A stretch of DNA of 64,000 nt from Oikopleura dioica (taxonomy: Eukaryota > Animalia > Chordata), in assembly GCA_907165135.1 (NCBI GenBank), contig OU015566.1, positions 3,224,001-3,288,000 on the forward strand. The letters run 5' to 3'. The notes beneath the pieces are model-generated. The model searched no databases, was not told the DNA's origin, and was given only the letters and a program-made list of their open reading frames with translations. Of this stretch, positions 5,401 to 64,000 are shown in pieces. The first letter of the stretch is position 1, and each line of letters begins with the position of its first letter. The translations under genes were made by a program, and so were the position numbers.

Positions 5401-5775
5401 TTTCGGAAAACGAACTTTTTTGATTAATTTCTCGATTCTTTGTTATCGTTAAAATAGTTTTAGGTGGTCTTGATTGCGGCCTGCCTCGAAACTAATAAAC
5501 TTCTGACAACAAGCTGTTGCCGTATTATGCCATAAATTTTATTTTCTTTGTTACGTTCGAGACGAATTTTAAGGTCAGCACCTTTCCGCATTGTTGCTTT
5601 CAAGTTCAGAGCCTTTCAAAGGCAGTTGTGAATATTCATTAGTACAGTCGTTCTCTGACTATAAGGCAAATATATAACGAGAACCAGAGCAAATAGAGAT
5701 TCTGTAACGACTGCTTTTTCGAGTAAAAAGAACTCTCATTATAAGATCACGTCTTTTTTTTTTGACATTTTGTTC

Positions 5776-7912: not shown

Positions 7913-8769
7913 AGCTTTTTCCTGATAGCATCTTAATCCCTGTTTACAATCAAACGTTATTTCAACCACTCGTAAATAAGAGCGAGGTTGGCAAAATTCA
8001 TCCATAAATCCGAGAGCTTATTTGACCTGTGAAACGATTTTGCATTTTTCCGAGATCAACAAGGTTCATGAAGATTCAAATGCAGGTTATTTTCATCAGC
8101 AGGATTAATATCTTTTGAATTTTCGATAAAGCATTTCAGTGATATATTTCCCTAGTCAATAGAATTGAAAGAAAATACTATCTTTTGAAAGCATTATTTA
8201 ATCAACTCAAATTCGAGACACACATTAAATTGTGACAGACTCATCGAGAATTGGAGCCAGTGAATGATGTCTAATGACTTTGATTTGAGCAATCTTCGAA
8301 AACAATTTTCCCCATTCATCTTAGTTCGACCGTAAATCTGTGCTTCCGATTTATGGTTTTTCTTTTAACGATTGTTGACGTAGCCTACAAAATCCTCTCG
8401 AAATATTGCTTTCAATGATCGTCAATAATCGTAATAACATTTAATATTTTTAAACGTCATTTTGACATTGTAAAACTTGATTTTCCAAAGAAACTGATAT
8501 AATTTCCTTCGGTATTAAAAAAGCAATAAACATTTGTTTCGATTAGTTTTTTTCTGAATTGATACAAATACAAGGCCGAATCTACGAAACAAGCTGCCGA
8601 CAACATAATTCTCAAGATTTATCGGAGGATAAGCCCTTAATTTTTATCAGCCTGGACGGGCATTGTAGATTAATCTCGCTGCAGATCGTAAAAGCTTAAG
8701 CTCCTGGTGTTGTAGCGCTACGTGAGCGATCATAATATCAGTAGAGAAAAAAACGAAACGAAACTACGA

Positions 8770-11009
8770 ATGAAATATAAAGTTTGTAAACAAAATTAAT
8801 CAAAAGATAACAGAACAAAAGTTTGAAACTTAAACTTAAAATTTTCTTTCTTTTTTTATGAAATCTTTAGTTCTTCCTGGGCATCCTGTGCCTAGGAACA
8901 GTATCCTGCCTTGGAGTAACCGACCTCACTTGCGCTGAAAACTCTGATTGCTACGCATACAATGCTTTTTGCAATTCAACAACCTTGACTTGCTACTGCA
9001 ACGATGCATTCTCCTACTACCTTACCCCGCAAGACCCCGAAATCGAAGTCAATGGGCAATTATTGGAAGAAACATGCGTCTTAAAAACTCGTAAAGTCCC
9101 CCTTTTGCCCTCCGTCCAAATCAAGGCCAATTTAGCTTGCGACTTTTACGTGGAGGAAAATGGCCCGTGCCCTGCTAACTCGAATTGCATGATTCAAATC
9201 GATGGAACTGCCGAGTGCGCTTGTTATCCTGGCTTCGAATCGACGGATGCTGACGGTCAAGTCGGAGTGGATGGGGTTACTTGTGAAAGGAAAGGGATGA
9301 TAAAATCATTTTTGTTTTTCATGAAATCAATTTATCAATCCAAAAATAAAGAATTAATCCATGCAACTCCTACTCCTGTGACGCAATAGCAAATTCTGAG
9401 TGCGTTGCCCTTTCCGAAACGGAAGCTAATTGTGCATGTGGCAATCTTTACGAGCCGTACGTTTTCGGACAATCATGGGAGCTGTCAGAAGACGATCTTT
9501 TTCCCAATTCATTTGCGCCAGACGTCATTTGCAATCCTAAATTTCCCTGTTTTGATCAAACCTGTGGTGGGAATCAGACCTGTGTCGTGAACAACAACGA
9601 TGACGGAATTCCCACTGCTTTCTGTGCCTGCGACGATGGCTTTTCCTCTACTGGAGCTCAAACAGTCCTCATGTCGGATGGCGGTCTTGAGTGCGAAGAT
9701 CTCGACGAGTGCTCTGATGACGCGCTTAACTTTTGCGCTGCCACTCAAACCTGCATCAACCAAGTTGGAAGCTACGAATGCGAATGCTCTCCTGGATACC
9801 TTCCAAATACTGACGAGAACACAGTGTCTGTTGCTCCTTGTGTCCAATGCTCAGGACCAGGGGCAACGGAAAATGACGGAGAATGCACTTGTTATAATGG
9901 AGCGATTCTGAGCGAGGGTGATAGTACCCTCTGTGTGTGTCCTGATGGTTGGGAACAGGTAGGTAATATGTGTTCGCTAGGAGGAACTTCTTCGACAACA
10001 ACCACAACTACTACCACAACTACGACTACAACAACAACTACTTCCACGACGACAAGTAAGACTACGACAACAACCACTACTACGACGACAACCACTACTA
10101 CGACGACAACCACAACAACGACAACTACAACAACGACAACTACTTCAACAACAACAACTACCACTACTACCACTACGACAAGTACAACTACGACAACTAC
10201 GACTTCCACAACGACCACTACTACGACGACAACAACAACAACTACAACTACTACAACAACGACAACTACATCCACCACAACTACAAGCACAACAACAACA
10301 ACTACGACAACAAGTACGTCGACAACTACTACAAGCACCATCACAAGCACAACCAAAAGTACAACAACGAGCACAACTACCACCTCGACTACCACGACTA
10401 CTTCAACAAATACAACTACCTCGACGACTACTACCACAACGTCAACAACTACAACAACAACCACTACCACCACAAGCACAACGAGCACAACTACGACCAC
10501 TACAACCATATCTCAAACAACAACTTCAGGCGAACCTTGCTTTGGTCCAACCAGCCGTTTTGAAAATGGCGCTTGCACTTGCGACTTTACAATCCGAAGT
10601 ATCGAACTAAAAGATGACCAGAAAACCTGCCGTTGCAAAGAAAAATTTACTTGGAGAGAGAATCTTGGAATTTGCGACTGTGAGCCTGGTCTTTTCGTGA
10701 GTACAAAAGTTTATAGAAATCATTAAATGAGTTAAAAGAAATCGATTCGGGGAGGTTGCGTTCCACCAGAAGACAACTACATTCAATGGAAGGGACCCTT
10801 CGGAAAATGCGAAGGAAATCGTCGGAAACGAGCGATCAAGCAAATCGACCGTGTTGAAAATGGCGCTACTGAGGTTAGGTTATCTTCTTAATTAATATAA
10901 GAACAATGTCAAGGCTCCTTGGTTCGGAAGAAATGTCAACTCTTGGAAAGTCACTGAAAAATGCGGCGCCGATAGACCAGGTTCGAATCCTTCGAAAGAA
11001 GATAATTGA
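8770..11009 (+). CDS. Secreted EGF-repeat protein with a ~175-residue poly-Thr mucin stalk and a Cys-rich C-terminus
   Basis: Signal peptide MKYK-FFLGILCLGTVSCLG, several EGF modules including a cbEGF-type CEDLDECSDDALNFC...CINQVGSYECEC, Thr tract at 9988-10525, then further Cys modules; stop TGA at 11007-11009. Confidence 0.85.
9988..10525 (+). repeat. Coding (ACN)n threonine tract
   Basis: Near-continuous ACA/ACT/ACG/ACC codons inside ORF 9587..10726. Confidence 0.95.
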
Positions 11010-39006: not shown

Positions 39007-39603
39007 GGCACGCGATGCATGAAAATGATCGTCTTGTCGAGCTCTACATTGGCATCTAGGTCTCAACCCTTTTCATCCATTTATTCTCGAAATCAATATT
39101 TTCAGAAAACAGCTGATTTCAAAAAGGCTGAAAAAATAAATTTCAAGGGTTCATACCATGATGCCGATGTAAAGTTCGACAAGACGATTATCTTCATGTA
39201 TCGCTCAGAAATCTTTATTGAAAATCGTCTTAGGAATCGAGTCCATTCGGGGAACTAAGAAGAAAATAAGAAGGTTTTTTAACTTATTTTTACAAACATA
39301 AGAGTAGGCTGTTTTCAAAAACAATAAGATGAGTTTTTTAGAGAGCTATTTAACTTCGAATTGACAAATATCTTCTACGTTCAAAAATGGCAAATCATCA
39401 AAAACAGAAAATATCAACGCAACGGCAAAAAAATATCAAGTATGAACAAAGTGGTTAAACTTGCATGACATACCATTAGAGCTCTCTATTACAAGAGTGC
39501 TGAATTTCGCTCATGAACTCATCTAGTGGAAAGGGCGACTTCGTCAAATTGAAAAACGAATGTGTTTCTCGATTTTTTCAGAGAGAACGATTTTCATTTC
39601 AAA

Positions 39604-40380: not shown

Positions 40381-40808
40381 TTACATAGAAGTCAGTCGAA
40401 TCTGCTCAGAGCTCATTTGTTCAACTTTGTACTTTTTCGTGATATCGTCGTGTCTCGCACTCCAGGCGGCGCCGATCTTCGGCACTTGTTGAATAAACTC
40501 AATGAGTCCGATGAAAACCGTGATCAAGCCAGTAATGAACATGATCCAAATCGCGATCGTCTTCTGATGCGGGCGGGAGATGTAGCAAGTGACGATGTTG
40601 TTGCATGGTTCGCGGTCGCATTGGTAAGTCTAGAAAACGGTTTGTCTGGTAGACAGGGGGACAGGGGCTTACCTCTGGCATGTAAAGAGTCCAGGCGTAG
40701 ATTTGAAAGTAATACCAGATGAAGATCGCTTCGATAATTGTTCGGAAAAACACCTGAAGGTTTTGTCAGCTCAAAAATCGCGAGAATCTCTTCTTTCGTG
40801 GTCTTACC
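40381..40808 (-). CDS. Connexin 3' exons (TM3, E2, TM4), separated from the 5' exons by the 17-kb transposon
   Basis: VFFRTIIEAIFIWYYF...TYQCDREPCNNIVTCYISRPHQKTIAIWIMFITGL. Removing the element gives ...LAYVTM|gtaaga-54 nt-ttcag|VFFRT in frame. Confidence 0.92.
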
Positions 40809-40811
40809 ATT

Positions 40812-41091
40812 GGGACGTGAAAATATAAATTTTCGGTTTTGACAAAATGTCGTAAACGTAACATTTTCAAAAATCTAAAAGTGCAGTTATGTCGAGCTAG
40901 ATGTGCCATTCATGAATCTGCAAAAAATTTTGGGATTTCATTATTATGAAGCGTGGGCGGGGCGATCTAAGAAAAAATTACGAACTCGCCTAGGGACCAG
41001 GGGTACTTATTTTTTCGGTTTTTTTTTGGGCTTTATTATTCTCTATGATCCAAGGACGCTTCATCTTTTTTCAGATCTAAAATTACTCATC
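40812..41091 (+). repeat. Left terminal inverted repeat
   Basis: Reverse complement of 57677-57956 with 4 substitutions and 1 homopolymer indel by manual comparison; contains a GC box (GGGCGGGGCG). Confidence 0.95.
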
Positions 41092-41615
41092 GTTATCATC
41101 AGTTATTGCCAAATTTCAAATTTGATAATAATTTCGAAAAATTCTTAATAAATGCAAAACGAAAGATTCTTTTTCTGAATTAAATTATCTATTTCTTTAA
41201 TAAAGCATAAAAATGATAAAAAAAAGTATTCTCGGAAAAGATAAACCTTTTAAAAATCGATTTTTATTCATTTAAAATATATAAATACAGTAAATATTCT
41301 GATATCTGCAAGATCACTAGTCTATCACCTGAAATTTGTAAAATCACTCGGATTAATGTTAATGATTATCCACTGATTATCCTTATCAGTGGTTCCCGCT
41401 CTCGGCGAGCGAGAGCGGCATGTTGCGCCCTCTTTTGGCCGCAGAAAAGTGGCATAAAAATCGCTTCCGCTTCCGGAAAAAACAAGTTCAAAGGCAAAAA
41501 TTTTAAAACACCAGGGGTTCAATTATTGACATTAGCTAGTTTTTCATAAATTTTGATTTTATTTTTCTGAAATTTGTGAAACATGGAAAATATCAATAAA
41601 TGAACCCCTGGTTAA

Positions 41616-44748: not shown

Positions 44749-45920
44749 ATGAAAATTCCAGAGCAAAAAGCGAGAGCGATGCGAGAGAGAGAAAGAGAGC
44801 TTCGAGAAAGATATGGTGTAAGAAAAACAAGAGATTTACCACTGAAACTTTTGGCGAGACTAGATAATTTTAAGATAGATGAAAAGTACTTTTCTATCCA
44901 CTACATGTCAAGTAATTTTCCTAATTTCATACATCATGTCAACAAAACTAAATGTCAGCCTAAGTTTAAGAAAAATCTCATCAAAACAGCCGAAAAAATT
45001 TGTCTTACCCATCTTTCTGAACTGAATAAGGCAGACTCTCTCTATCTCCAGCCTATTTTGCTGCCTGAATTTCGCTTGAAAAAAAATTCGGCTTTGAAGC
45101 GTCCGGCAAATATAAAAAAAATCCATGAAATGGATAGTGAAGACCGTGCAGCTTTGGTTGGAAAGAACTCGAATGACATTGTCGCGGAGATTTCGCCAAT
45201 GTTCATCACCAAAGATCATCTGAGTAGCTTAAGCGGAACACAATGGGTGGACGGAGAGGTATGAAAAATAGTCAAATTTTCTTCACTGAACTCATTTTTA
45301 TTTAGGTCATCAACTTGTACATCAAGTTGATCGAGCAGCGATCTCTCCAAAATCCGGGCATGCTTCGAGTACATGCATTCAATAGTTATTTGTATGAGAA
45401 GCTTCAAGAAGCAGGCCACGCTTCAGTCAAACGATGGACGCGGAAATGCAACATTTTCAAGACAGACATCATCTTGTTCCCGATCCACGTTGGCGGGACT
45501 CATTGGACGCTGGCCTTTGCTGACACGAAGAAAAAGGTGCTCCGCTATTGCGATTCAATGGGTGGAGATAACCCGAAATGCTTGTCGATTCTTCTTGAGT
45601 ACTTGAAGGTAATTTTGATTGATCTCAAATGTTTCAAATTGATAATTTTAGACCGAGCACGAGGTGAAGCAAAACTGTCCACTGAGCGATGACTGGAAGT
45701 CCGAATCGATTTCAGAAGAAGTCCCCCGGCAAACGAATTCTTACGGTAATACAGTTTTTAAAAATCACCAATTTAATATCTTTCAGATTGTGCTATATTT
45801 TGCATGACTATTGCCGAATATATTTCCCGCGATGCGGCTTTCGATTTTTGCGAAGATGACATGCCCAATTTGAGAAAGTTGATAGGGTCTCAACTTCTCA
45901 GAAAAAAACTTATGTACTGA
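44749..45920 (+). CDS. Cargo: SENP1/2-like SUMO protease (Ulp1, peptidase C48), apparently intact
   Basis: QWVDGE-VINLY, VHAFNSYLY, VKRWTRK, FPIHVGGTHW (His), RYCDSMG (Asp) and RQTNSY-DCAIF (Gln/Cys); three GT-AG introns keep the frame. Confidence 0.92.
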
Positions 45921-47230: not shown

Positions 47231-47260
47231 GGGGGGGAGCGGGAGCAAGGTCGAAAAATT

Positions 47261-48730
47261 AAAAATCACGAAACGGGGCTGAAACGGCCCGAAGGGCCGT
47301 CAAGCCCCTTAAATTTGAAAATCATGGAACGGGGCTGAAACGGCCCGAAGGGCCGTCAAGCCCCTTAAATTTAAAAATCATGGAACGGGGCTGAAACGGC
47401 CCGAAGGGCCGTCAAGCCCCTTAAATTTAAAAATCACGGAACGGGGCTGAAACGGCCCGAAGGGCCGTCAAGCCCCTTAAATTTAAAAATCACGGAACGG
47501 GGCTGAAACGGCCCGAAGGGCCGTCAAGCCCCTTAAATTTAAAAATCACGGAACGGGGCTGAAACGGCCCGAAGGGCCGTCAAGCCCCTTAAATTTAAAA
47601 ATCACGGAACGGGTTGAAACGGCCCGAAGGGCCGTCAAGCCCCTTAAATTTGAAAATCACGGAACGGGGCTGAAACGGCCCGTAGGGCCGTCAAGCCCCT
47701 TAAATTTAAAAATCACGGAACGGGGCTGTAACGGCCCGAAGGGCCGTCAAGCCCCTTAAATTTGAAAATCACGGAACGGGGCTGAAACGGCCCGAAGGGC
47801 CGTCAAGCCCCTTAAATTTAAAAATCACGGAACGGGGCTGAAACGGCCCGAAGGGCTGTCAAGCCCTTAAATTTAAAAATCACGGAACGGGGCTGAAACG
47901 GCCCGAAGGGCCGTCAAGCCCCTTAAATTTGAAAATCACGGAACGGGGCTGAAACGGCCCGAAGGGCCGTCAAGCCCTTAAATTTAAAAATCACGGAACG
48001 GGGCTGAAACGGCCCGAAGGGCCGTCAGGCCCTAAATTTAAAATTTAAGGAACGGGGATGAAACAGCCCGAAGGGCCGTCAAGCCCCTTAAATTTGAAAA
48101 TCACGGAACGGGGCTGAAACGGCCCGAAGGGCCGTCAAGCCCTTAAATTTAAAAATCACGGAACGGGGCTGAAACGGCCCGAAGGGCCGTCAGGCCCCTA
48201 AATTTAAAATTTAAGGAACGGGGCTGAAACGGCCCGAAGGGCCGTCAAGCCCTTAAATTTGAAAATCACGGAACGGGGCTGAAACGGCCCGAAGGGCCGT
48301 CAAGCCCTTAAATTTAAAAATCACGGAACGGGGCTGAAACGGCCCGAAGGGCTGTCAAGCCCCTTAAATTTGAAAATCATGGAACGGGGCTGAAACGGCC
48401 CGAAGGGCCGTCAAGCCCTTAAATTTAAAAATCATGGAACGGGGCTGAAACGGCCCGAAGGGCCGTCAAGCCCCTTAAATTTAAAAATCACGGAACGGGG
48501 CTGAAACGGCCCGAAGGGCCGTCAAGCCCCTTAAATTTAAAAATCACGGAACGGGTTGAAACGGCCCGAAGGGCCGTCAAGCCCCTTAAATTTAAAAATC
48601 ACGGAACGGGGCTGAAACGGCCCGAAGGGCCGTCAAGCCCCTTAAATTTAAAAATCACGGAACGGGGCTGAAACGGCCCGAAGGCCCGTGAAGCCCCCTA
48701 AATTTAAAAATCAAAAAACGGGGCTGAAAC
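47261..48730. repeat. Tandem array of ~26 x 56-bp (some 55-bp) palindromic units
   Basis: Unit AAAAATCACGGAACGGGGCTGAAACGGCCCGAAGGGCCGTCAAGCCCCTTAAATTT; period checked (47461 to 47517). Confidence 0.97.
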
Positions 48731-48802
48731 TTTATAACATCCTTTTTATCCCTTACTTTATCATTACACAGGAGGAAACGAATTTAAAGATTTAATTCAA
48801 GT

Positions 48803-51800
48803 TTATTCAAAGAAAGCAGTTTTTTCATATTTTTGTGCAGTCCAGAATTTCAAATGAATTTCACGCAAAAAATTAATATCTTTGGAATTAAATTGATAAG
48901 GGGACTTTATAAAACTATAATTTTTAGTCGACAGAATTTCAGAATCCAGGATCATGTGTGGGCCGCAGTCATCCGCGTTTTGCGGCATCGTTTCCGGGAT
49001 TTCGACGTCAAAAAAATCTCCCCAAATATGACTGTTAACTTTCGTGAGAATCTCGCCAACTAAAAATAGACTTATTTATCCTTAAAAATATGACGACATA
49101 CCGTAACTCCAATAATCTTCTGGACTGTCAGCGTGATCATACAGGATTATCTTGTTCTCGTCTTTCAATAGACCAGCGACAACGAAATGACCCTTTTTTC
49201 TTCCGATACCAAGAAATGACTTATTTTTGATCGATTCTTCATTTAAGAAAAAAGTGAAGATAATGCGATTGACATTTTCCATTCCTCCACCATAAAAATG
49301 AAAAATTCTTGGCCAGAAGTTCCGAATATCATTTTCGTTTCTTCGAGAATGGCAGCAGTTTTATTTGGATCAACAAGTAAAACTTCTTGAGAAAATTCAT
49401 TCTTCATAAGATTGACGAGGTTGCAAAGAACATCCAAATAATAGGCTCTATTTGGTTTGAAAGAATTGCGACGATCCGCGATTTCTTTTTGTAGGTTTTG
49501 TCTTTACCTTCCGTCATTTCGCGAACAGCCCTCTTTATTTGTTTCATATCAATATCGATATTAGGCAAAGAAAGTTGAGGAGGATTTCGTGTTGCGCTCT
49601 CGTCTTCTTTTTCGGAAACAATAAGTGTTGGAAGCGGATGAACGACCGATTTAGGTATCTCCTCTTCTTCAAAGTTCTCGGTCTCTGTCTCACCATCAGC
49701 ATTGATCGACGATGAATTTACAAATTTACTCTGGCTGTGATTCTGGGAATGCGCTTGATTTTGGCTTTGGCTTCGATTTGTGTCTGGTTCGAATTGCTTC
49801 TCATAATCCATTCGACTTTGGCTTTGGCTTTGATTTTTGTCTGGATCGAAATGCTTTTCACAATCCATTTGACTTTGGCTTTGGCTTTGAGACTGGGTTT
49901 TATCCTTCTTATTTTTGTGTCGAATGTCCGCTTCACGAATTGAGCGTTCAACAACTTCTCGATATGTCATTGGACAATTTGAGAAATCACCGGCAGCACA
50001 AGAATCACAATTTGATGAACAGATGGCATTTGTGAATTGAATTTTCGATCGATCTTCTGAAAAACATGCCATTCGCACTCTTCGGCATTGAAAAGTCGAG
50101 GGGAACACTTCTCTCCGCTCTAGTTTATCGTAATTCTCCAGGTTTACAAATACACGTTCGAAGTATTTTTCGAATGGCCTTTCTGCTCGAATTCGATTCT
50201 CCTCAATTCGAAGTTTTTCAATCAGTTCAGGCAGATCAAGTCCTTCATCAAGACTGTTGTACTTGTCCGCTATCGAGGGCACAAAGCCATGATAGCCATC
50301 GATAAGACTCTTTTTTGGATGAACAATTTTTATCAATAACAAGAATTATGAAAAATGAAAAAAAAAGAAAGCCTACAATTAAAAATACTTTTTGCTCACC
50401 CAACCTTTCCATGGCTCGGGCATTTAAATCGAAGGCATGTCGGCCGAAGACTCTCCAATATGGAGAGACTAAACCTATTTTTGAACTCCCCCCCGGAGTT
50501 GTCACTGACTGCGAGGATTTTTCTTCCGGAGAGATCAAGATTACGCTTGGATGCATCTTCGAATGCGATGTCTTCAAGTATTTTTATACTGGAAATATCC
50601 TTCTCATAGGAAAGACCGTGGTAAACCATTCGAAACCATTGCTCTTCAATATCATCATACGCGGAAAAGATATAAGTCAGCGAAGCAACTGATTTGCTGT
50701 TCTAAAAAAAGTTAAAATCAAATTTTATTCTACTTTTACCAAAAATTGTCCTTGAGTTCTTCTTGAAGGTAAAATCGAGAAATTTTTGCCATAGTCAAAC
50801 TAAAATTTGTTCTTTTATCTTTACTTTAAAATTTTTACCAACCTCAACGTAAATTTGATTTCGATCAAGTTCGACTTCACCCGCTGAACACTTGATTCGC
50901 TTTTCGTGTGATAATTTTCTGTCGAAATGATGGGCGTGCATTTTCTGGAGGCTTTCAGAGCAAAATTGGAACGCCTCTTTGAATTTCATAAGAGCTGTTT
51001 CAGATCCTTGAGGCACCCAAATAATTTCTTTTGATTTAACCTAACATGAATTAATTAATTTTCAAATAAAGCGTCAAACTACCTTAAAATGAGGGATTCG
51101 ATAATTATGTTCCGATGATTTAACATCTTTTAAGAGATCGTTTAAAATATCGTCGATTGAGCTTGAATCGCATTTATGATTGCATCGGTTACAGGATTTT
51201 TCATTTTTCAAGTGTCGAAAGCATTCTATCACAAAAAATAAATAGAAGATCAAGAAAAATGACTTACGGAAATGTTTACGAATATCAGCGCAATGAAAAT
51301 TTTCATAAATATTGTCTCCACAGACACTTCTTTGGAAGAAATTCTCGACGGTTATCCAATTGTATTTTTTACGCTGATCTTCCGTCATATTTTCTCGGCG
51401 AATTTTATTGATGAAGTTGATGGATGACTGTCCATTCGTACAGTTTTCGCATTGGCATTGAAGACCCCAATAATTATCGCTACTTCTTATGACAACGTTT
51501 ATTGGGCGAAATTTATTCAAAAGATGCTCCGAAACATAAAATCCCAATCGTTCTCGAGCAAGTGCGTAAACTTCATGAGTTGTCGCGGATAAAATAAGTT
51601 TTTGCACTTTAACGATTTCTTCTGCGCCCTTTTTGAGATTCCTTGTTTCGTGAAAAGCGCCAATTTCATTAAATATCTGAAGCCAAAAATCATCGGTTTT
51701 TGATTTTCGTAGCGTCAAAGTAGACCGGTTCTTCGATACGATCGGGCAGGATTTTTCCAACCACGTTGTTGCTATCGTTTTTCTGTTGAGAACTCAGTAA

Positions 51801-52993
51801 TTCGCCTCGGCTCTTTCGAATAACTTGATTTTCTAAGATTTTTCGGCGATCTTCAATCGCCGTTAATGTTGCATGCTTGCTGACTTCAATTCTGTTCATT
51901 GACTGAATAATATATGGAAGTACTGAAGAGTCGGGTCGTGATGGAACGATTGAAGCGATAAATGAACGTTTTGCATCAGTTGATATCTCCGCGAATCGAG
52001 GGACAAAATCTTTGAGAAATTCAATTTTCACGAGTCCAAGTGAGTAAAACACAGATGTTATCGTCTTTTCATCAAGCTGTTTGATGATGGATTCGATGCG
52101 TTTTTTTGTATGTTTTATCAATTTATCCTCAGCTTGACATTGACGTGCAATTTTCCGATTGATAAACTGTTCTTCCTCCTCCAGTTCTTTTGAAAATTTT
52201 GCTTCTTCATATCGACGTTTTCTGTCATCTTTAGAATATTCTTTTTTTTTATCAGAAAGTTGAACATCTTTGTCGAAGATTTCCCAAAGTTCTTGAGAAT
52301 TTTTTTCGTCAGTTCGATCTTTGCGAAAATTCAGCGTGCATAAAGATGCGTGCGAGGGAAAAATTGACGCGGGAATAAACATAAGACAGCATCTGCACTG
52401 GATTCCATTGCAAGTACTTTTATGTTCAGTAAAAAATCTTGTTTTTGCGATCTTTTCCGAGCAAAAAATGCACTGAACACGCTTCAGATTTTGACTTGAG
52501 CGACCTATAAATATTCATTAGTTTTTATAAAAATTTGCTACTATCACCTCTCGGAAAGTCTTTTATTGGAACTTTGATTTCTTGAGGCGAGTGATGAGCC
52601 CTTCGATATTTACATTTACCATGAAGATGACTGTTATATTCGTCTGGAAGAAGAAAAATTTTGCCGCAAGAACGACATTCAGTTCCTAGAATCATTTCAT
52701 ACAATTATTGATAAATTTTTACGCCCTACCATTGCAGGTAGTTTCGTGTTCGGAATAATCAGTATTTTTGAAGAATTTAGCGCATTTACAACACTGCTTG
52801 AATTCGGGATAATCTTGAAATATCTTTATTTATAGAAAAAAATCGAAAATTAACCTTTTAAGTCACTTATTATAACCAGTGGTCCGACGATTGATCTTTT
52901 AACTGCATCTTTTCTGATAATTTGATTCAAAAGGGTGAGTGATATTAAAAATATCGAGACAACTGATCCGATGAATATTGTAAACCAGATCAT
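48803..52993 (-). CDS. Sola2-like DDD transposase with N-terminal zinc fingers and a fused C-terminal Ulp1/C48-like domain (~1150-1200 aa; start uncertain)
   Basis: Spliced motifs KVQKLILSATTHEVY, KFRPINV, CQCENC, HHFDRK, FDYGKNF (D, 50794-50796), VSDNSGGEFKN (D, 50501-50503), SHGK-SLIDG (D, 50298-50300) and CSSNCDSC. These parallel Sola2 QKRLIL..L.E.Y / LRP / DFSENY / SDG..QYKN / HGKG..DG, recalled from memory. Confidence 0.78.
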
Positions 52994-54389: not shown

Positions 54390-55800
54390 ATTAAATGCTG
54401 CCTTTCAACTGTCGTGTTCTGATTCTGGCTCGCTCTACACAAAGATTTGAATAACCCTTGGGTATGGTAATCTAAAGATTGTTAATAAAGAAATATTTTG
54501 ATAATATACCGATATCCTCGCACGGCTGACTGTTTGTAAGCAGACATTTGACAAAATTCGACAGTGCCTCGAATCGATGCATGTTGTCATCAACTACTTG
54601 CTCCCACTCAACTGAGTCGGCTTTTGCTTGTATTTTTAAACTATCATCATTCTTGAATGGTGTTGATCGGAAGTCATCAATAGCAACAGCAAGTTTTTGT
54701 TGGTTCTTTTTTAGTTCCTGTAATGCAACATTCACTCTTTTCTCCAAGTCCTCGGTTTGTTTATGAGCTTAATTTTGAAGTTCAGATTTTCAATATTTTA
54801 AAATTTCAGAACCTCGGTAGGAGCCAAAATAGGGGAGTGAAAAACTAATTTCGTCCACTGCTGCAGTCAAATCGAACCCCCTCTTATGTTTATCTTGAAA
54901 ATCATCATTTTCAATACGCTCATCGGAAATAACATAATCAAGGATTGAGTTTGTCTTCATTGAAATTTTGAGAGAGTCAACGTAAGCGAGCGCCAATTTT
55001 AAATCCAGTAAATTTTCTTTTTGACAAAAAATGAACTCATTGTCCACCACACGGTCATTGAAAGTTTTTTTTCTCTCAGCTCGCTCATGTTTTTTGAACT
55101 GGAATCCAGGTGAAATGTACATCAACTCCTCTTTTTCAGCTGAAGATGTAGTCACGATGAAACTCGACAAAATGAGTCGTCGTATAAGAAAATCGTTTCG
55201 ATCAGCAAAATTTCGAAAAGTGAGGAATCGTTGGAATGCCTCAATCAATAGGTCACCGCATAGAGATTTTATGGGCTCACTCGTTTTTCGTGATCTTAAA
55301 AAGGGGCACTCAAGATTTTAGATGTCTTGAAAACAAATAAATATGATAAGAAATTATAAAATGCCTCTTTCCTGACGGACAATTGAAATAATTGATGCGC
55401 GTCGCATCCTCCCAAAATCTTTGTTACGATGGAATTTAAAAATTCTTCTTGCTGAGGGTTGGATAGCTTAATTTTCTCCACAATTTCGGCTTCAATATTC
55501 AAATTGAAAAAGGTCTCGATGGAGACAAACATATTTTTAGCAAGAAAATGCGCTTTTTTATGATGACAATCGTATTTACTGAGCTGTATTTAAACGAAAA
55601 GCCACCTTTCCTAAAAAGACGCCACAAGAAAGGTCAGATGATATCACTGCTTCTCCTGTGTCGGGAAACTGGACACTCATCGAAGAAGGTCCTGGGTATT
55701 TAAGGTTCAGCGTGAATTCGGCGAATTCTTCGCTACCGATAATGACATTTGCCGTATCGTGGATACTAGAAAGAAAGATTTTGAAGAATCTTCTACAGCT
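54390..55800 (-). CDS. Cargo: orphan multi-exon gene (partly duplicated at 1-980)
   Basis: Co-oriented ORFs 55576-55878, 55296-55532, 54790-55248 and 54472-54747 separated by intron-sized gaps; no family recognised. Confidence 0.5.
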
Positions 55801-56746
55801 GATTAATATTTTTATGTTAAAATCACTCAAATGGAAACCAATGTATATAAACCAAAGGACTGATTGTTCAATGATCAAATTAAAAAATTTAAATATATAA
55901 AACGATAAGCAGACATTGTTTATAATAAATTTAGATAGAAGCTTCTTAAACGGATTTTATCCATAATAAGACAAATAAACTTATTTTGATCATAAATATT
56001 TGCTTACGTCTTAAAATTCGCATTTACTTAATTCCAAAAGGATTTTTTCAATGCTTACTATTCGTCAAATAATTGGTTCGTAAAAAATATATTTAAAAAC
56101 AATAAGCATGCATTTTGAATCGTTAATTTGGAAAAAATTGTCTAAAACGGATTCTATCCATAATTAGACAGGAAAATTATCAATTATCACAAACAGCAGC
56201 TTTTGTTTTTAAATAAATTTTTATTTTTTCTTCAAATCTAACACGTCTTAAACGGATTTTAATCCATATTAAGACCAATATTTCTGTATTTATAGTCCTA
56301 CATTAATGAATAATAAATTCTATTCACAATGGGAGTTGAATTTAATTTTATACAATTATTTTACTTTTATCATTTAATCAGCGGTAAAAGTTCTTAAATA
56401 AAAAAATATCATATTTTAAAGTGTGTATCTTTCTCTTAGTTGAAGAGATTTCTGTTAATTTGACAAACAAAATTCGTTGGTTTTTGAGGTCGCAAGTATG
56501 ACGCTCGCCGAGGCCTTCATATGGCATATTTACCACGTATGGAACTGTATCGGACTACCCTCCTCTTTGACCCCTCGACCTTGAACCCGTCTGTCAAATG
56601 TTTTTATGAATGATTTCTGTTACTTATTCAGTCCAAGTGTATCATCGACTCTTTCATGCTGGGTCACGGATTTTAATCCATGAACACCAGAAGTAGTTTT
56701 CCGAATCAACTGTCTTGACTGATCCCCCAAATACGATTAAGAATAC

Positions 56747-56983
56747 TTACGAGGTTAGAAACGAATCCTCGACCTCAAAAGAATACTTTCGATTGTCAAC
56801 GAATTCTTGCTCCGCAGAGCGGCGTTGTCTTATTTCCGACGATGAATTCGTCGCAGACGCATCTGAGCCGAAAAAGACTTTCAGCCCTTCATAGATCTCT
56901 CTTTTGTTGTCCCGGAGTAAGTCCGCTATGAGAGTTGCGGACAAAACTGCGATGACTAGCTGAACAAAAATGGGAAATTGCAT
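56747..56983 (-). CDS. Cargo: small protein with an N-terminal hydrophobic segment (also at 1930-2166)
   Basis: MQFPIFVQLVIAVLSATLIADLL..., true ATG, a GTAAGT donor at the ORF end. Confidence 0.5.
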   Translation of the reverse strand: MQFPIFVQLVIAVLSATLIADLLRDNKREIYEGLKVFFGSDASATNSSSEIRQRRSAEQEFVDNRKYSFEVEDSFLTS

Positions 56984-57676
56984 GTTGATGATGATAAAAC
57001 CAACTCACGTCAAGTTATAAAGGCCAATGCCAACTGATAGAAACAACTGATCAAAACATAGCATGATACCGTAGACTTTCATTTTGACACTTATGGCGCT
57101 TCAGAAGAGGCGGCGCAGCAGGTCATCACAACCGCGCTTCTATTTTATCACACTTTGGAAATGACCGATGTGATCGAAGTTTATCCAAAATGGCAATAAC
57201 GAGCTAATTCTCAATTCTAAAAATTCTTGTCTTCAAGCATTCATTCTTCCATCAGGTTGGTCCTCCGGGAGGTCCTCCAGCAGAAAATGGCCAAAATAAG
57301 CCGAAAAAATGGCAATTACTAGCCCTTGATTATTGTTCAATGACTTTTTGAAATACTTCTCTTCCAGCACATAATCTTCCACCAGATTGGTCCTCCGGAA
57401 GATCCTCCAGCAGAGAGTGACCAAAATTAGCCGAAAATGGCAATTACTGGCCCTTCAAAGCTATTTAATTATCTTTTTAATTATTTGTTTTCCAGCAGTA
57501 ACTCTTCCACCAGGGTGGTCTTCCAGGAGGTCTTCCGGCAATTCTCGACCAAAAGTGACCTTAGGTGGCCATATACTGGCCAATCACAGCTATATATCCA
57601 ATATTTTTAGTATAATCCTCATAAACTATTACATAATGGGTAAAAATAATGAATAACGCAATATTTCATAATTGGG

Positions 57677-57956
57677 ATGAGTTATTTTTGATCTGAAAAA
57701 AGATGAAGCGTCCTTGGATCATAGAGAATAATAAAGCCCAAAAAAAAACCGAAAAAATAAGTACCCCTGGTCCCTAGGCGAGTTCGTAACTTTTTCTTAG
57801 ATCGCCCCGCCCACGCTTCATAATAATGAAATCCCAAAATTTTTTTGCAGATTCATGAATGGCACATCTAGCTCGACATAACTGCACTTTTAGATTTTTG
57901 AAAATGATACGTTTACGACATTTTGTCAAAACCGAAAATTTATATTTTCACGTCCC
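57677..57956 (-). repeat. Right terminal inverted repeat
   Basis: Reverse complement of 40812-41091; followed by ATT at 57957-57959. Confidence 0.95.
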
Positions 57957-58906
57957 ATTGTTACATAAGCAAGAAACAAAACGGAAGGAGTCGAATTTTC
58001 AGATTTGGTCGCTTTTGTCGCTCGATCATCATCTTTATTTTCCTTCTCGTCTTTTTTCGCTTTTTCTAGGGCGTTTTGTCGAGCCTCGCATTCTTGATTG
58101 ATTCTGAAAGAAGATAAAAAGGGAGGAAAAAGAAGGATGATCCTACCGATCTTCTTCTTCTTTGAGTTGTGCTTCAAGCTGTTTTCCATCGATTGTTACA
58201 CCACGGATTGTTTCGTAATCCTCAAAAGAACTTGAGCTTTTTTCGAATGAGTCGCCCTCTTGACGGTCCTTCCTGACTCAGGAAAAGTAAAACGCCAGAT
58301 TCAACAGGTCGCGACATGTTTAAATAGATGTGCAAATTCACAGTCACGGGCGCAGACTCTCAAATAAACTCTCCTACCTTTGAGTAGTCGATCTTTTCTA
58401 GGTCTTCTTTCAGCGCTCTCAGTTTTGCGGTGTATTCATTTTCGATCTTGGCCTTGTCTTTTTCAAGTTCTTCTAGCCGCAACTTTCGTGCAATCGCGAT
58501 TTTTTGCTTCTTGTCACTAGAAATGGCAGTATTTGCGATTGCCTCTTCTTTTGGCTTGTCACCTGACATAGACGACAAAAAGCATAATTGGGAGACAAAC
58601 GCAAAGCATTTGAATCGCCCAATATCCATTTGGCGTGATTGGGAAGAATTGATTGATGCACATTCTAGCGCAACCAGGCGTTTTTGTGTCGCATTCTAGA
58701 TCTGACCCTCCAAAGGCGCTACCGACGATGGAGAATAGAAGGAGAAGTCTTTATACAGGGTTTTTGATTGAAATTATGTTTCCTTGTATGAGTTATCAAA
58801 GCCCGTTCCTTAGTGCTAGAAAAGTCGAAATCCAGTATTTGCCCAATAAGGTTGTATGCTTCTGAGTCTCTTGCAGGTAATTCTCTATCACATGCCACCC
58901 TGCCAT
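57957..58906 (-). CDS. Connexin 5' exons (copy 2), continuing at 40808 beyond the transposon
   Basis: Same sequence as 3140-4089. Confidence 0.9.
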
Positions 58907-59163
58907 GATTCAATCCCTCTGTTATCAATTCTGTATCTTTCAAAATTCGCGAGAGAAAAATCGTATTTGAAGAGAGATTTGGTAAAAAATGTTTATTTCC
59001 TCCGGCAGCAAACTTTGGAGCCCACAGACATGATTTTGTCACGTTACATTGAATTGACGCGAATAAAAACGCAGGAAGAATTTCAATGCAAATAACAGTT
59101 TTGCTGATCTTTTTATTTTTTGATTTATAGTGGTCATTCGCTTTTTTCTTGGAGGAAAGATGG

Positions 59164-60217
59164 TTAATCCTCGTTGTTGTTTTCTGAAGATTCGAGTCGG
59201 TTTTCGAGCTTTTCTTGAATCGCGCCGATGATTGATCCCAACCAAGCGAGGCTAGAACATTTGATGAAAAAAGCCAAAAGAAGAATGTTTTCATACCCGA
59301 GATAAATGAAAATCACAATGCCAAATTGATAGTTGCTTCCTGGGGTAACAGAATAATCCCCGAATCCAACAGTAGTAAACGTAACCACCATGAAATACAG
59401 AGCCTCAAAATAGGTCCAGCCTTCTACCAAGCAAACGATCATGGCAGGGATGCAGATGAAGAAGCCAATGCCGAAAAGAAGGACGAAGAGAAATTTCAGA
59501 AAAAGAGGAATCTTTTCGAAGCGTCGTCTTATTTTCTTCCGAATAAATGTATACTTAAAATATTTTTCATGCTATTTTTTAGATAAAAACTTACGAGTTT
59601 GGCGATTTCTCCAAGAAGAGCGCCGCAAAGAACGATTCCCGGTATCACATAAAAAATAAAGAAAATTCTGCCTCCCACAGTCTAAAGTCCTTTTTAACAT
59701 GAACTCGTAGCTTGACAAACCTTAGGCGCAGTGTTTCCGTAACCAATAGTGGTCACGACGGTCATCACGAAATATACAGCGCTTTTAGGTGTCCAGTTCA
59801 TCGGGCAAGGCTCCTCCGGATCTTCTTTGAACATAGAAATAGGGACGCCTTTTCCTGCGTATTCCTCTGCCGTTGCGATGATATCCGTTAGGTTCTTTTC
59901 GGACAGGACGAATTGCCCGTCGGAATTGATCTCGAAGGAATCCCGCATTTCAACAAGCGCCCTTTGAGATTCTTTGCAGCGGATTATTTCTGCTGGGCCT
60001 TCGAGCTTTCCGAAGGAAAAGGTACCAATGATGACATAAATGATGAAGGTTAAAAAAACGAAGCTTTTTTAAAATGTCAATTTTTCAGTGAAAAATATTT
60101 ATGATCAAAAATAAATGACACTTTCCAAGGACGTCGCCATTTTCCCTTCTTTACCGAGCATTTTCCCTCTTCTTCTTTTCGTCCCACCACCTCGCGATTG
60201 ACTTCTCTCGTTTCCAT
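59164..60217 (-). CDS. K2P potassium channel, copy 2
   Basis: Same as 4347-5400. Confidence 0.92.
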
Positions 60218-60591
60218 TTTCGGAAAACGAACTTTTTTTGATTAATTTCTCGATTCTTTGTTATCGTTAAAATAGTTTTAGGTGGTCTTGATTGCGGCCT
60301 GCCTCGAAACTAATAAACTTCTGACAACAAGCTGTTGCCGTATTATGCCATAAATTTTATTTTCTTTGTTACGTTCGAGACGAATTTTAAGGTCAGCACC
60401 TTTCCGCATTGTTGCTTTCAAGTTCAGAGCCTTTCAAAGGCAGTTGTGAATATTCATTAGTACAGTCGTTCTCTGACTATAAGGCAAATATATAACGAGA
60501 ACCAGAGCAAATAGAGATTCTGTAACGACTGCTTTTTCGAGTAAAAAGAACTCTCATTATAAGATCACGTCTTTTTTTTGACATTTTGTTC

Positions 60592-62729
60592 ATGCGAGTA
60601 ACCACTCATCCAGAGGAATTGGCAAGAGAAAATGTCGAAAAATGGTTGCCAAATTTTACGCGGAAACTCAGGCGATCAACAAGTAGAAATGATTTAGACA
60701 GGCTCATTTTATCTGTCGAAAGAATGGAATTTTATAATCATGATTGTGCAAATTGGACTCAAGTTCTTTTTGAAGACCAACATTCATATGAAATGGGGGG
60801 AAAAATTCTCGGAAGCGAAGAATTGCTTCTTGATGTATTTGAGCCGACAGCATTTCAAAAAGAGATTCTCGCTAGAAACCCACAATTGAAAGGAAAATTG
60901 ATCGAGCGAAAAGACTTGAATGAAGAAACTGGAGAATGGCTACTTGATGAATTTCTTGCTGAGAAAACGATTTCAATTGGGGGCGAAGCGATTATTTTGA
61001 CGGAAAATTTCGAGGGCTTCGAAGTCGCTGTTCGCGTTCAAGCGTTTGACCCGTTTCTTTTTACAAATGATCTGAATGATGACGACTTGAGATTTGAGAT
61101 TCATCTTTCAAACGGCTACGAAATAGCGGAGGATAATTCTGAAGATGATGATGATGATGATTCACAAGTGATTCCATTTCATAAAAATCTCGTCAAAAAT
61201 TCCTGCAATATCGAATTTTTCGCAAGTGAAGATTGGGAAAAGCAAGACTGCTTAGGGTGGATCACAATTATGGAAAGATGCGACGGCGATTTAAGAGGTA
61301 GACTAAAAGCAGACGATTTGGCATTTGAAGAGCGAAAGAAAATCGCGATTGGAGTCAAGGAAGGAGACGATTATTTGGAGAGAATTGGAATTACGCATTT
61401 CGACCAGAAGCCGGAAAATATTCTTCTCGTCAATGGGGTGCCAAAATGGAGTGATTTCGGAATCGTCTGGGATCGCTCAGGAAGAGAAAGCTATCGAAAA
61501 CTTGGTTACGTCAGAAGAGGCAGCAGATTTTCAAATTATCGATGTCTTTGTAAGCTTTCCATTTATTTTTCAAAATTGTTCATTTTAGATTCGGGATCTC
61601 CGGCCTTTTCATTGAATTGGCAGCTCTGTGGAACCACCGGAGAATATTTTTCGAATATTTATGTTTTTATTCTGTGCGAGTGGAAAACTGCATGGAATCT
61701 TTGCTTCAGCCCAGTTTCACATGATCAAGCGGAGAAAATAAAGAGAAAACTAAAAGTTTGTCCAGATATTTTTTATTTGAACCGTCGATTTCTCTTTAAG
61801 ATCTTGAACGCTGAATGGTTATCAAATAAAACTTTCAAAATTGACGACATCGAGAAGTTATCGAAAGCCATCACAATCAAAAACGCTCATTTTTATTATT
61901 GTCTGGAGAACCAAAGTTTTACGAAGTCGCTTGAAATGGAAAATTTGAAACATCGACTAGCTAGAATGATGGATCTTGAATTCGAAAACTTGACGACGAA
62001 AAATATTGCTCAGAGAGAACGATTCCTTTCCGTCCCATTTTCTGTCAGCATTCTTGTTCGATGGACCATCAAAAATGACCTTCAGACGACTGATATAAAA
62101 ATGGAGAGCAAATATTCTCTTCACAAAATTTTTATAATCTTGACGATGGTTATTTACCCACGAAGCTTGCTGGGATTTAATCTGAATCCAAGAAACGCTA
62201 AGGGGGATTTTCAAACGACCGATGTCGAGATACTCCTAAAAAAGGCTTAAATATCCATCTTTTTTGAACAAAAGTGGCTTTGACATTTTCAAAGAAAGTG
62301 GCGATTTAGAGGGAGAGCTTGATTTTCAGCAAGGTTTGTTTCATAATTGTCATCGTTTTTATTTTTTTTCTAGTTCTTCTTCATCAAAACTTTCATTTCA
62401 CCCGCCCGTTGAGTGTAACTGGCGCTTATCTGGATTCCAAAGGAAGCGTCATTTTCCACCAAATGCTTCTTGCCGGAATCGAATACAATGAGTACATTTT
62501 GCAAAATACGCTCAGTGCAGCTTCATCATCGCAAATAAGAATCCCTCTTGACCGACGATACTACGCCTCTTACAAGATGACCAGATATTGCTACGACAAT
62601 TACAACGACCTCATTTACTACGGACCAAAAAATGAATTTATTAAATTGGCGAATGAGCAAATCAATATGAAAAAAGAAGTCTGGCATCTTCTTCCCCAAG
62701 CCTATTCAATTATTCTTACTGATAAATAA
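60592..62729 (+). CDS. Divergent kinase, copy 2, with a +1 frameshift (A6) near 62240
   Basis: The ORF stops at 62250 (LLKKA*) where copy 1 reads LLKRLKYP. Confidence 0.8.
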
Positions 62730-63586
62730 AGCTTTTTCCTGATAGCATCTTAATCCCTGTTTACAATCAAACGTTATTTCAACCACTCGTAAATAAGAGC
62801 GAGGTTGGCAAAATTCATCCATAAATCCGAGAGCTTATTTGACCTGTGAAACGATTTTGCATTTTTCCGAGATCAACAAGGTTCATGAAGATTCAAATGC
62901 AGGTTATTTTCATCAGCAGGATTAATATCTTTTGAATTTTCGATAAAGCATTTCAGTGATATATTTCCCTAGTCAATAGAATTGAAAGAAAATACTATCT
63001 TTTGAAAGCATTATTTAATCAACTCAAATTCGAGACACACATTAAATTGTGACAGACTCATCGAGAATTGGAGCCAGTGAATGATGTCTAATGACTTTGA
63101 TTTGAGCAATCTTCGAAAACAATTTTCCCCATTCATCTTAGTTCGACCGTAAATCTGTGCTTCCGATTTATGGTTTTTCTTTTAACGATTGTTGACGTAG
63201 CCTACAAAATCCTCTCGAAATATTGCTTTCAATGATCGTCAATAATCGTAATAACATTTAATATTTTTAAACGTCATTTTGACATTGTAAAACTTGATTT
63301 TCCAAAGAAACTGATATAATTTCCTTCGGTATTAAAAAAGCAATAAACATTTGTTTCGATTAGTTTTTTTCTGAATTGATACAAATACAAGGCCGAATCT
63401 ACGAAACAAGCTGCCGACAACATAATTCTCAAGATTTATCGGAGGATAAGCCCTTAATTTTTATCAGCCTGGACGGGCATTGTAGATTAATCTCGCTGCA
63501 GATCGTAAAAGCTTAAGCTCCTGGTGTTGTAGCGCTACGTGAGCGATCATAATATCAGTAGAGAAAAAAACGAAACGAAACTACGA

Positions 63587-64000
63587 ATGAAATATAAAGT
63601 TTGTAAACAAAATTAATCAAAAGATAACAGAACAAAAGTTTGAAACTTAAACTTAAAATTTTCTTTCTTTTTTTATGAAATCTTTAGTTCTTCCTGGGCA
63701 TCCTGTGCCTAGGAACAGTATCCTGCCTTGGAGTAACCGACCTCACTTGCGCTGAAAACTCTGATTGCTACGCATACAATGCTTTTTGCAATTCAACAAC
63801 CTTGACTTGCTACTGCAACGATGCATTCTCCTACTACCTTACCCCGCAAGACCCCGAAATCGAAGTCAATGGGCAATTATTGGAAGAAACATGCGTCTTA
63901 AAAACTCGTAAAGTCCCCCTTTTGCCCTCCGTCCAAATCAAGGCCAATTTAGCTTGCGACTTTTACGTGGAGGAAAATGGCCCGTGCCCTGCTAACTCGA
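63587..64000 (+). CDS. EGF/mucin gene, copy 2, 5' part (cut by the window edge)
   Basis: Same as 8770-9183. Confidence 0.85.

Follow-up and report, generated by a model that had tools for sequence, protein, structure and literature searches.

The transposon and its genes

The window analysed here is a stretch of 64,000 nucleotides of Oikopleura dioica DNA (contig OU015566.1, positions 3,224,001 to 3,288,000), and all positions are counted from its first letter. It holds a transposon that spans 17.16 kb and ends in 305-bp terminal inverted repeats (TIRs). The left TIR (40805..41109, plus strand, 305 nt) starts 5'-GGGACGTG, is flanked by ATT, and is 95-96% complementary to positions 57658-57963, where its partner, the right TIR (57658..57963), lies on the minus strand. 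Elsewhere in the genome, TIR pairs were found at spacings of approximately 3.0, 4.1, 7.6, 8.9, and 17.6 kb; the pairs lie on four chromosomes and are 82-94% identical, and at least seven copies, TIR-bounded or solo and 3-17.6 kb in length, were identified. TIRs and several mobile copies, the features expected of a Sola transposon, are thus both present. All six TIR-bounded copies agreed on a target site duplication (TSD) of 3 bp (AAT, ATT, or ACT) adjoining 5'-GGGACG. A symmetric 4-bp TSD was also considered and was rejected; a 4-bp reading would require asymmetric ends and suits five of the six copies. Natural deletion derivatives of the 17-kb element exist.

Two convergent protease-coding genes lie within the element. 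One is a canonical SENP/Ulp1-type cargo gene, an exon of which (45306..45689, plus strand) matched PF02902 at 60.2 bits and shared 91% protein identity with a locus at C2:3145238-3145666. The other is the transposase gene, on the minus strand, for which a sequence-only reading of the window had proposed a second, divergent C48-like protease domain; with the cargo gene at 45306-45689(+), the domain is indeed the second of its kind in the element. A satellite array with a 56-nt unit occupies 47255..48731 between the two genes, and more than 100 arrays related to it occur genome-wide.

The first catalytic Asp motif of the transposase (IYVE|FDYGKNFS...QGQFL) is encoded by an exon of 60 nt (50740..50799, minus strand) that is 78% identical to the copy on C5. 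The second (ILAVSDNSGGEFKN) lies in an exon at 50405..50701 on the same strand, which ends in PSHGK, shares 80-97% identity with its C5 counterpart, and has further copies in this genome. A phase 0 GT..AG intron (50310..50404) separates PSHGK from SLIDGYHGF, and the same junction (TSRHGK|GLVDGAHS) occurs in L013, a second family of six copies in the genome. The large exon that follows (49102..50309, minus strand) encodes the third Asp within SLIDGYHGF (50309-50283), a Cys module (QCRRVRMA at 50090-50067 and CDSCAAGDFSNC at 50009-49974), an acidic linker rich in SQ, and, beyond the linker, the N-terminal two-thirds of the C48-like domain. The remaining third is encoded by the last exon (48803..49059, minus strand), which closes with the stop codon at 48805-48803. 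As read from these motifs, the putative catalytic triad is all-Asp (DDD). When each of the transposase exons was searched against Pfam, no match was obtained.

Reading frame of the large exon and the fusion in related elements

The sequence-only reading had quoted four peptide strings from the C48-like region, all of which were found on the minus strand where it had placed them. It had joined them by GT-AG introns of about 62, 71, and 42 nt or, alternatively, by 1-bp indels. The 42-nt intron (49060..49101, minus strand, GTATGT..TTTTTAG, phase 1) was confirmed; its counterpart is 43 nt long in two further copies, L003 and L014, and it is less conserved than the exons, with position and phase identical in all lineages. 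The other two introns were not upheld. In L002, a near-identical tandem duplicate of the window copy, an ORF of 420 aa (1780-3042) runs unbroken from SLIDGYHGF to ..DYWSY, and in L003, a 70%-identical paralog on C5, an ORF of 379 aa (766-1905) does the same. Because the sister copy and the paralog both read through, the 62- and 71-nt introns do not exist, and alignment with L002 and L003 showed the alternative of 1-bp indels to be right for two of the three joins. The first frameshift of the window copy lies in a plus-strand T-run at 49486..49490 (an A-run on the coding strand), with T5 where L002 has T6, and the second in a T-run at 49332..49335, with T4 where L002 has T5. The junction previously given as FFIFM-SFLGIGRKKGHFVV was wrong; the true sequence is ...RIIFTFFLNEESIKNKSFLGIGRKKGHFVV.

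A stop at 49404 had been named as the point at which the transcript, if it ended there, would lack the protease. The stop is present in the window copy, but it is the product of the first deletion (49486..49490), a 1-nt homopolymer change that is absent from the sister copy. The window copy might accordingly be read as a true frameshifted pseudogene, its protein ending at 49404 and its protease part dead at this locus. The letters of the window do carry both 1-nt deletions and the stop, and in L014, the fourth copy, the large exon is also broken, over three frames. Against this, the differences between the window and L002 are mostly in homopolymer or simple-repeat length, as in long-read consensus error, and the longer version agrees with two diverged paralogs. 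Setting the satellite array aside, we found no substitutions inside the element, and the 16-kb flank held a single clear one. Besides that substitution, the roughly 28 kb of unique sequence compared contained approximately 18-19 differences in the length of homopolymers or simple repeats and a cluster of four called substitutions beside a 3-nt indel at 39126-39130. L002 was ruled out as an independent insertion, as it belongs to a 54.8-kb tandem duplicate. We consider a genuine pseudogene somewhat unlikely, and the two deletions are most likely long-read consensus errors. Homopolymer errors in this assembly can give rise to stops and apparent introns.

With the frame restored, L002 and L003 encode the third Asp (HGK|SLIDGYHGF), the Cys module, the linker, and the protease His and Asp in that order in one exon. 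The claimed physical fusion to the transposase is borne out by this single exon without any assumption about splicing, and the protease lies in the transposase reading frame of both ORFs, as in a transposase-Ulp1 protein. The fusion is kept in three lineages of the element's own family, in the L013 family, and in a TARA marine metagenome contig (L010). In L013, HGK|GLVDG and the Cys module are followed in a single ORF by a C48 domain that scored 32.2 bits with PF02902 and has its Gln 5 residues before the Cys. The marine protein (P0004, from L010) matched the transposase module with an E value of 1.5e-4 in a phmmer search of 1.84 billion representative proteins with the 420-aa exon; beyond its transposase module it has a GT-AG intron and then a domain scoring 37.8 bits with PF02902. 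That search returned five matches, none of them to the protease part, and one of the five, P0005, was rejected as a false, low-complexity match. A search for homologous proteins with the L013 C48 ORF returned none, and the canonical C48 exon L017 had only five near relatives, too shallow a set for a deep profile. Because L013 and the marine contig have a C48 domain above the Pfam threshold in the corresponding position, the protease is an old component, integral to this transposase lineage.

Identity and possible role of the C-terminal domain

The C48-like domain spans approximately 235 residues (48803-49520, minus strand). In its large-exon part lie the peptides YYLDVLCNLVNLM (49443-49405) and RIIFTFFLN (49267-49241), followed by the putative catalytic His in GHFVVAG (49192-49172) and the putative catalytic Asp in ILYDHAD (49147-49127); the last exon supplies the Gln and Cys in MPQNADDCGPH (48988-48956). 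All of these are on the minus strand. The residue order H-D-Q-C is that of C48 enzymes, and G-H, D-H, and P-Q-x3-D-C-G-P are invariant, the four residues His, Asp, Gln, and Cys among them, across three lineages (window/L002, L003, and L014) that are 32-68% identical. The domain further resembles yeast Ulp1 and the SENPs in its His-x17-Asp and Asp-x38-Gln spacings, in the Gly that follows the Cys, in an N-terminal '..LD..(I/L)..L' helix, and in a '..IIFxF..N' strand. It differs from them in three respects: the HW motif has lost its Trp and reads H[FY], a 13-residue insert precedes the His, and the Gln stands 5 rather than 6 residues ahead of the Cys, as had been noted from the sequence. In yeast Ulp1 (1EUV) the corresponding spacings are His-17-Asp and Gln-6-Cys. 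Since the spacing of 5 is shared by the L013 domain, which passes the Pfam threshold, it does not exclude membership in C48.

The exons were searched one by one against PF02902, for which the Pfam gathering score is 20.7 bits. The last exon reached 16.2 bits (E 0.0097, profile positions 135-202) and its L003 homolog 14.6 bits (E 0.03), both below that score, and the last exon of L014 gave no match; the two subthreshold matches sit on the Gln/Cys section of the profile. The His/Asp exon gave no Pfam match in any of the three lineages. With hhalign against a 14-sequence alignment of canonical C48 domains, the sole best match of the large exon fell on the His..Asp motif (P 0.028) and that of the last exon on the Gln..Cys motif (P 0.002), and the two placements were collinear. 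The His/Asp motif was not recovered in pairwise hhalign comparisons of the large-exon profile with P0004 or the L013 ORF, and sequence and profile searches of the PDB, run for each exon with alignments of two and three sequences, returned no C48 match.

Several of these results might suggest that the His/Asp/Gln/Cys pattern is coincidental and that the C-terminal region has an unrelated fold. The His/Asp exon had no significant database match, and with a home-made C48 HMM and 2000 shuffles it scored no better than 1-30% of the shuffles, a weak result. The AlphaFold2 model of the large-exon part of the domain alone was of low confidence (pLDDT 44, pTM 0.34), too poor for a fold search, with an order of predicted helices and strands that was compatible with a clan CE fold yet unreliable. 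In the ESM-Atlas, the nearest clusters were other cysteine peptidases (C39, C58, and Josephin) rather than C48, all subthreshold at less than 0.9. Coincidence is nevertheless highly improbable: both exons align independently and in order to the C48 catalytic motifs, the Pfam matches in two paralogs fall on the correct section of the profile, and transposases related to this one have a genuine C48 domain in the corresponding position. On the basis of the invariant H-D-Q-C residues and the hhalign placements on both catalytic motifs, the earlier assignment to C48 was retained. We conclude that 48803-49520(-) is very probably a strongly diverged C48 domain (Ulp1/SENP, clan CE) at the C terminus of the transposase of a 17.16-kb Sola-type transposon.

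The dN/dS ratios were approximately 0.06 for the large-exon protease part, 0.10 for the last exon, and 0.07 for the transposase C terminus, figures that are rough because dS is saturated. As judged from these rough ratios (∼0.06-0.10), the protease domain is under purifying selection. Conservation between this genome and a marine eukaryote, combined with purifying selection despite the divergence, argues that the protease is useful to the transposon. The domain could work as an isopeptidase, tethered to the transposase and directed at SUMO or a different ubiquitin-like modifier (UBL). At the donor or target site it might act on chromatin, repair, or silencing proteins that carry SUMO, or on the transposase itself.

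Alternatively, the domain may be a C48-derived pseudo-protease that no longer cleaves but serves the transposase in binding SUMO/UBL or in protein interaction. Its divergence past Pfam recognition would fit such a role, as would the lost Trp, the shortened Gln-Cys loop, and the insert before the His, and the separate canonical SENP gene could supply the activity to the element. Binding alone, however, would require none of the invariance seen at the four catalytic positions across lineages with no more than 32-46% identity, and the Gln-x4-Cys spacing is common to the L013 domain that scores above the Pfam cut-off; we regard loss of cleavage as unlikely. Self-processing, which the sequence-only reading had suggested, would have the protease act in cis, cutting the transposase polypeptide (for example, to detach its catalytic part from the linker) and not UBL conjugates. 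It would be consistent with the long low-complexity linker between transposase and protease, and processing proteases are known in clan CE, adenain being one. The linker is, however, the least conserved part of the protein (41% identity), and C48 enzymes characterized so far act, to our knowledge, on UBL C termini; we regard cis cleavage as very unlikely.

If the domain is an active deSUMOylase, a wider reading can be offered tentatively, and we hold it to be possible rather than probable. An old Sola-type DDD clade, present in this genome and in marine eukaryotes, would carry an obligatory C-terminal deSUMOylase, diverged past Pfam but still functional as an enzyme; paired with a host SENP gene captured recently, it would form an anti-silencing device, in which both proteases would remove SUMO from factors of chromatin silencing or repair located at the transposon. 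The clade would then represent a third transposase superfamily to have recruited Ulp1. This fusion in a third type of transposase, unrelated to the other two, would, if true, mean that Ulp1 was recruited repeatedly and independently. With a fused diverged protease, a canonical SENP cargo gene, and natural deletion derivatives, the element offers a compact test system.

Comparison with Sola, Ginger1, and Mutator transposons

The transposase was compared by eye, and without scoring, with the cores of two Sola2 reference strings, Sola2-1_HM and XP_003724602 (Majorek 2014 supplement, PMC3985635), and all three motifs fitted. DFAENYT of Sola2 resembles D-[FY]-x-x-N-[YF]-[TS] of the element, and the longer Sola2 string DFAENYT..IQSYHW resembles the first Asp motif (FDYGKNFS...QGQFL) as a whole; TDGCAGQYKN resembles [ST]-D-[GN]-x-x-G-[QE]-[YF]-K-N, and ATSHG resembles SHGK (PMC3985635). 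Some of the element motifs are fitted equally well by Sola1 (SDNCGGQ) or Sola3 (LPS..GQ). An affinity to Zator was rejected; the Zator motifs do not fit. Sola2 and the element share the all-Asp triad, TIRs, and the lack of a Pfam model, whereas the element, at 17 kb with cargo genes, is far larger than a typical Sola transposon. The TSD of Sola2, as described by Bao et al. in 2009, is reportedly 4 bp, which does not match the 3 bp (AWT) measured here. The label Sola2 therefore holds as the closest motif match but not for the TSD, and the best resemblance of the element, judged from its motifs, is to the Sola superfamily with Sola2 nearest.

C-terminal Ulp1 domains have been published for transposases of the Ginger1 and Mutator types, and a role of Ulp1 in the transposition of such elements is still a proposal (PMC2836005). 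Like the element, Ginger1 encodes a cut-and-paste transposase with C48/Ulp1 at the C terminus of the same ORF, may have a few introns, and has TIRs (PMC2836005). The Ginger1 core, a DDE of the Gypsy-integrase-like kind, has YPYY, H2C2, and GPY/F motifs and a match to rve, whereas the core here is a DDD, Sola-type one with no Pfam match; likewise, the Ulp1 domain of Ginger1 is recognized by pfam02902, whereas the domain here falls below the cut-off. Mutator-like elements (KI-MULEs and others) are similar in that they bear an Ulp1-like protease with a proposed role in transposition (PMC2836005). They belong to another transposase superfamily (MULE), in which the plant ULP may be a separate or a fused ORF, and no kinship to the transposase here was seen. 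The TSDs of MULEs are 8-10 bp.

The fusion had been put forward as unheard of in Sola. No Sola element with a C48/Ulp1 domain was found in the literature searched, and to that extent the claim stands, but this type of fusion had already been published elsewhere. Because transposases of other superfamilies are already known to carry Ulp1, the present case extends an established theme modestly.

Reading Frame and Copies of the Transposase 3′ End

The four peptide strings that the sequence-only reading placed at 48803-49520 were all found on the minus strand, spread over three frames in the window. A DNA search of the organism's own genome (eukaryote, 64 Mb) recovered three copies of the stretch, namely that of the window, a nearly identical one lying 55 kb upstream (L002), and one of 70% identity on contig C5 (L003); a later protein search of this genome added a fourth (L014, 46-50% identical), the large exon of which is split over three frames. 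In a three-way DNA alignment, the window copy lacked one base in each of two plus-strand T-runs (49486-49490 and 49332-49335), and both bases were present in L002 and L003. Because L002 and L003, with the extra bases in place, each give one ORF (420 and 379 aa, respectively), two proposed introns of 62 and 71 nt are instead frameshifts of the window copy, as allowed by the alternative of 1-bp indels, and the junction FFIFM-SFLG does not exist. The third proposed intron (42 nt) is real: it lies at 49101-49060 (GT..AG, phase 1), interrupts the same codon position in all copies, measures 43 nt in L003 and in L014, and is poorly conserved in sequence. Introns of this genome are 40-90 nt long (GT..TTTAG). 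A public library protein, P0002, is identical to ORF 5989-6681(-) of L014 (G000:C5:4748001-4758000), so that library includes prokaryote-style ORF calls of the same or a very near genome.

L002 was rejected as an independent insertion, being part of a 54.8-kb tandem duplicate, 30 kb of which was 99.44% identical to the window. The duplication spans window positions 1-9180 and 54818-64000, with G000:C4:3194001-3224000 corresponding to 24884-54818; the right inverted repeat of the upstream element copy also lies within the window (2841-3146). With the satellite array excluded, the comparison gave zero substitutions over 12.5 kb of the element, one clear substitution and one small cluster adjoining an indel in the 16-kb flank, and ∼18-19 differences in length, almost all of them within A/T homopolymers. 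Across the 30-kb alignment, differences were almost only in homopolymer lengths and satellite unit numbers. As judged from the alignment, this pattern is characteristic of long-read consensus error or extremely recent duplication, and the segmental duplication is either very recent or an assembly artefact. A stop at 49404, at which the transcript might have ended, is present in the window copy but is probably an artefact, as the frame-keeping version of the T-runs is the one common to the diverged paralogs.

A Protease-like Domain Fused to the Transposase

The multi-exon transposase gene (minus strand) runs collinear to its C5 counterpart between ∼55764 and 48803, the stretch at 48803-49520 being its 3′ end. 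Its large exon (49102-50309) opens with the third Asp motif, SLIDGYHGF, continues with a Cys module (..RVRMA..C-x3-C-x2-C-x2-G-D-F-x2-C) and a ∼150-residue SQ-rich and acidic linker, and ends within the protease-like domain at the protease His and Asp. All of these occupy one open frame in L002 and L003, so the proposed fusion is independent of any splice. A conserved domain bearing the C48 catalytic residues forms the C-terminal end of the predicted transposase polypeptide. Between the C4 and C5 lineages, non-synonymous change was ∼0.2 and synonymous sites were saturated (pS 0.71-0.75); at this saturation, dN/dS was ∼0.06, ∼0.10, and ∼0.07 for the large-exon part of the domain, the last exon (48803-49059), and the transposase C-terminus, respectively, and the linker was much less constrained than domain or transposase. 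By this measure, the protease-like domain is preserved as carefully as the transposase itself.

The two domain exons were searched separately against Pfam and profiles, and fold prediction used the large-exon part alone. Against PF02902, the last exon scored 16.2 bits in the window and 14.6 bits in L003, short of the 20.7-bit cut-off; the matches cover profile positions 135-203, the site of the Gln and Cys. The His/Asp exon by itself had no match in Pfam, PDB sequence searches with the domain exons were blank, a home-made C48 HMM was weak on these exons versus shuffles, and AlphaFold gave a pLDDT of 44. Direct sequence evidence for the suggested C48-like identity is thin, and the indirect evidence stronger. 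Three lineages (32-68% identical) share G-H, D-H, and P-Q-x3-D-C-G-P without variation, and the spacing His-x17-Asp is that of Ulp1. When compared with 14 aligned canonical C48 pieces, each exon profile gave a single match, exactly on His..Asp (large exon, P 0.028) and exactly on Gln..Cys (last exon, P 0.002), in the correct order.

The identity also draws on relatives. P0004, from a TARA marine contig, matched the transposase module (E 1.5e-4, library of 1.84 billion proteins) and continues across a GT-AG intron into ..WFNNDMIN..HWLVGAIDLNEHKIIVIDS (PF02902, 37.8 bits). A second transposon family in the organism's own genome (L013) has the Sola-like motif TSRHGK/GLVDGAHS, the same Cys module, and, ∼70 residues after it, a single-ORF C48 domain (32.2 bits). 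By these profile matches, relatives of the transposase bear, in the corresponding position, a C48 domain that is beyond question. The Gln was correctly read as 5 rather than 6 residues before the Cys, and because the L013 domain has the same spacing (PQTNRDC), we regard it as a trait of the transposon-borne clade and not a defect. The six L013 copies lie at G000 C1:9129281-9130355, C3:2667431-2668505, C5:4906448-4907522, C1:1230010-1231083, C2:2761138-2762211, and C2:5053236-5054309; in the one copy inspected, the second Asp motif reads ..LHNASSEFK.., so this Asp may be missing or in another frame.

The Element and Its Superfamily

A Pfam search of every exon gave no transposase match. Three minus-strand motifs stand in an RNase-H-like DDD core arrangement: IYVE/FDYGKNFS..QGQFL (50799-50740, exon boundary after IYVE), ILAVSDNSGGEFKN (50509-50483), and PSHGK/SLIDGYHGF (50419-50405 and 50309-50283, split by an intron). 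Compared by eye, they resemble published Sola core strings, best those of Sola2-1_HM (DFAENYT..IQSYHW, TDGCAGQYKN, and ATSHG; Majorek et al. 2014 supplement, PMC3985635); Zator affinity was rejected because the motifs do not fit. Upstream of the core, four zinc-finger-like repeats, C-x2-C-x11-12-H-x3-4-C (52377-52793, minus strand; CCKCAK.., CRSCGK.., CIFCSEK.., and CRCCLMF..), are probably the DNA-binding part. The C5 copy has ∼144 extra bases in its second-Asp exon, between GGEFK and NRFSL (G000:C5:12298950-12299094), with short inverted ends (GGTCGACGAG...CTCGTCGACC); this insert might be removed as a GT..AG intron, adding two residues, and would then be an intron possibly derived from a transposon.

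The gene lies within a 17.16-kb element that has a 305-bp inverted repeat at either end (40805-41109 and 57658-57963). Copies of these repeats delimit or mark at least six further places in the genome, including shorter relatives of 3.0, 4.1, 8.9, and 7.6 kb (G000 C4:5711884-5714884, C2:11499186-11503254, C5:9276331-9285211, and C1:16223170-16230816, respectively) and a solo repeat (C3:1214693-1214973); spacings of the pairs are 3.0, 4.1, 7.6, 8.9, and 17.6 kb. On this structure, the element belongs to a family of DNA transposons that includes deletion derivatives. All six pairs examined had a 3-bp duplication (AAT, ATT, or ACT) adjoining 5′-GGGACG, and flanks of the relatives suggest a palindromic target, C-AWT-G. 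The target-site duplication of Sola2 is 4 bp, at odds with the 3 bp found here. Given this difference and the by-eye comparison, the element is classed as a putative member of the Sola superfamily, Sola2-like by motif.

The element also carries a canonical SENP-type cargo gene, an exon of which (45306-45689, plus strand) encodes protein 91% identical to a C2 locus (L018, G000:C2:3145238-3145666), whereas the cargo copy in the C5 element has diverged much further; this suggests that a host ULP gene was recently captured or took part in an exchange. The two protease-coding genes converge on a GC-rich satellite array lying between them (47255-48731, 56-nt unit), which is missing at the corresponding place of the C5 copy; related arrays (90-96% identity) occur at >100 places in the genome.

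Proposed Role and Known Fusions

We infer that the C-terminal domain would be a UBL-specific isopeptidase, most likely for SUMO, held at the transpososome, where it could take SUMO off the transposase, repair factors, or silencing factors. A non-catalytic, binding role is unlikely, and action by cis-processing still more improbable. Our literature search, with Bao et al. 2009 and Repbase outside its scope, found no report joining Sola or Sola2 with Ulp1 or C48 in the fusion sense. The fusion type itself is known from published transposase-Ulp1 fusions of Ginger1 and Mutator (PMC2836005), and the role envisaged here is the one suggested, though never demonstrated, for those Ulp1 domains.
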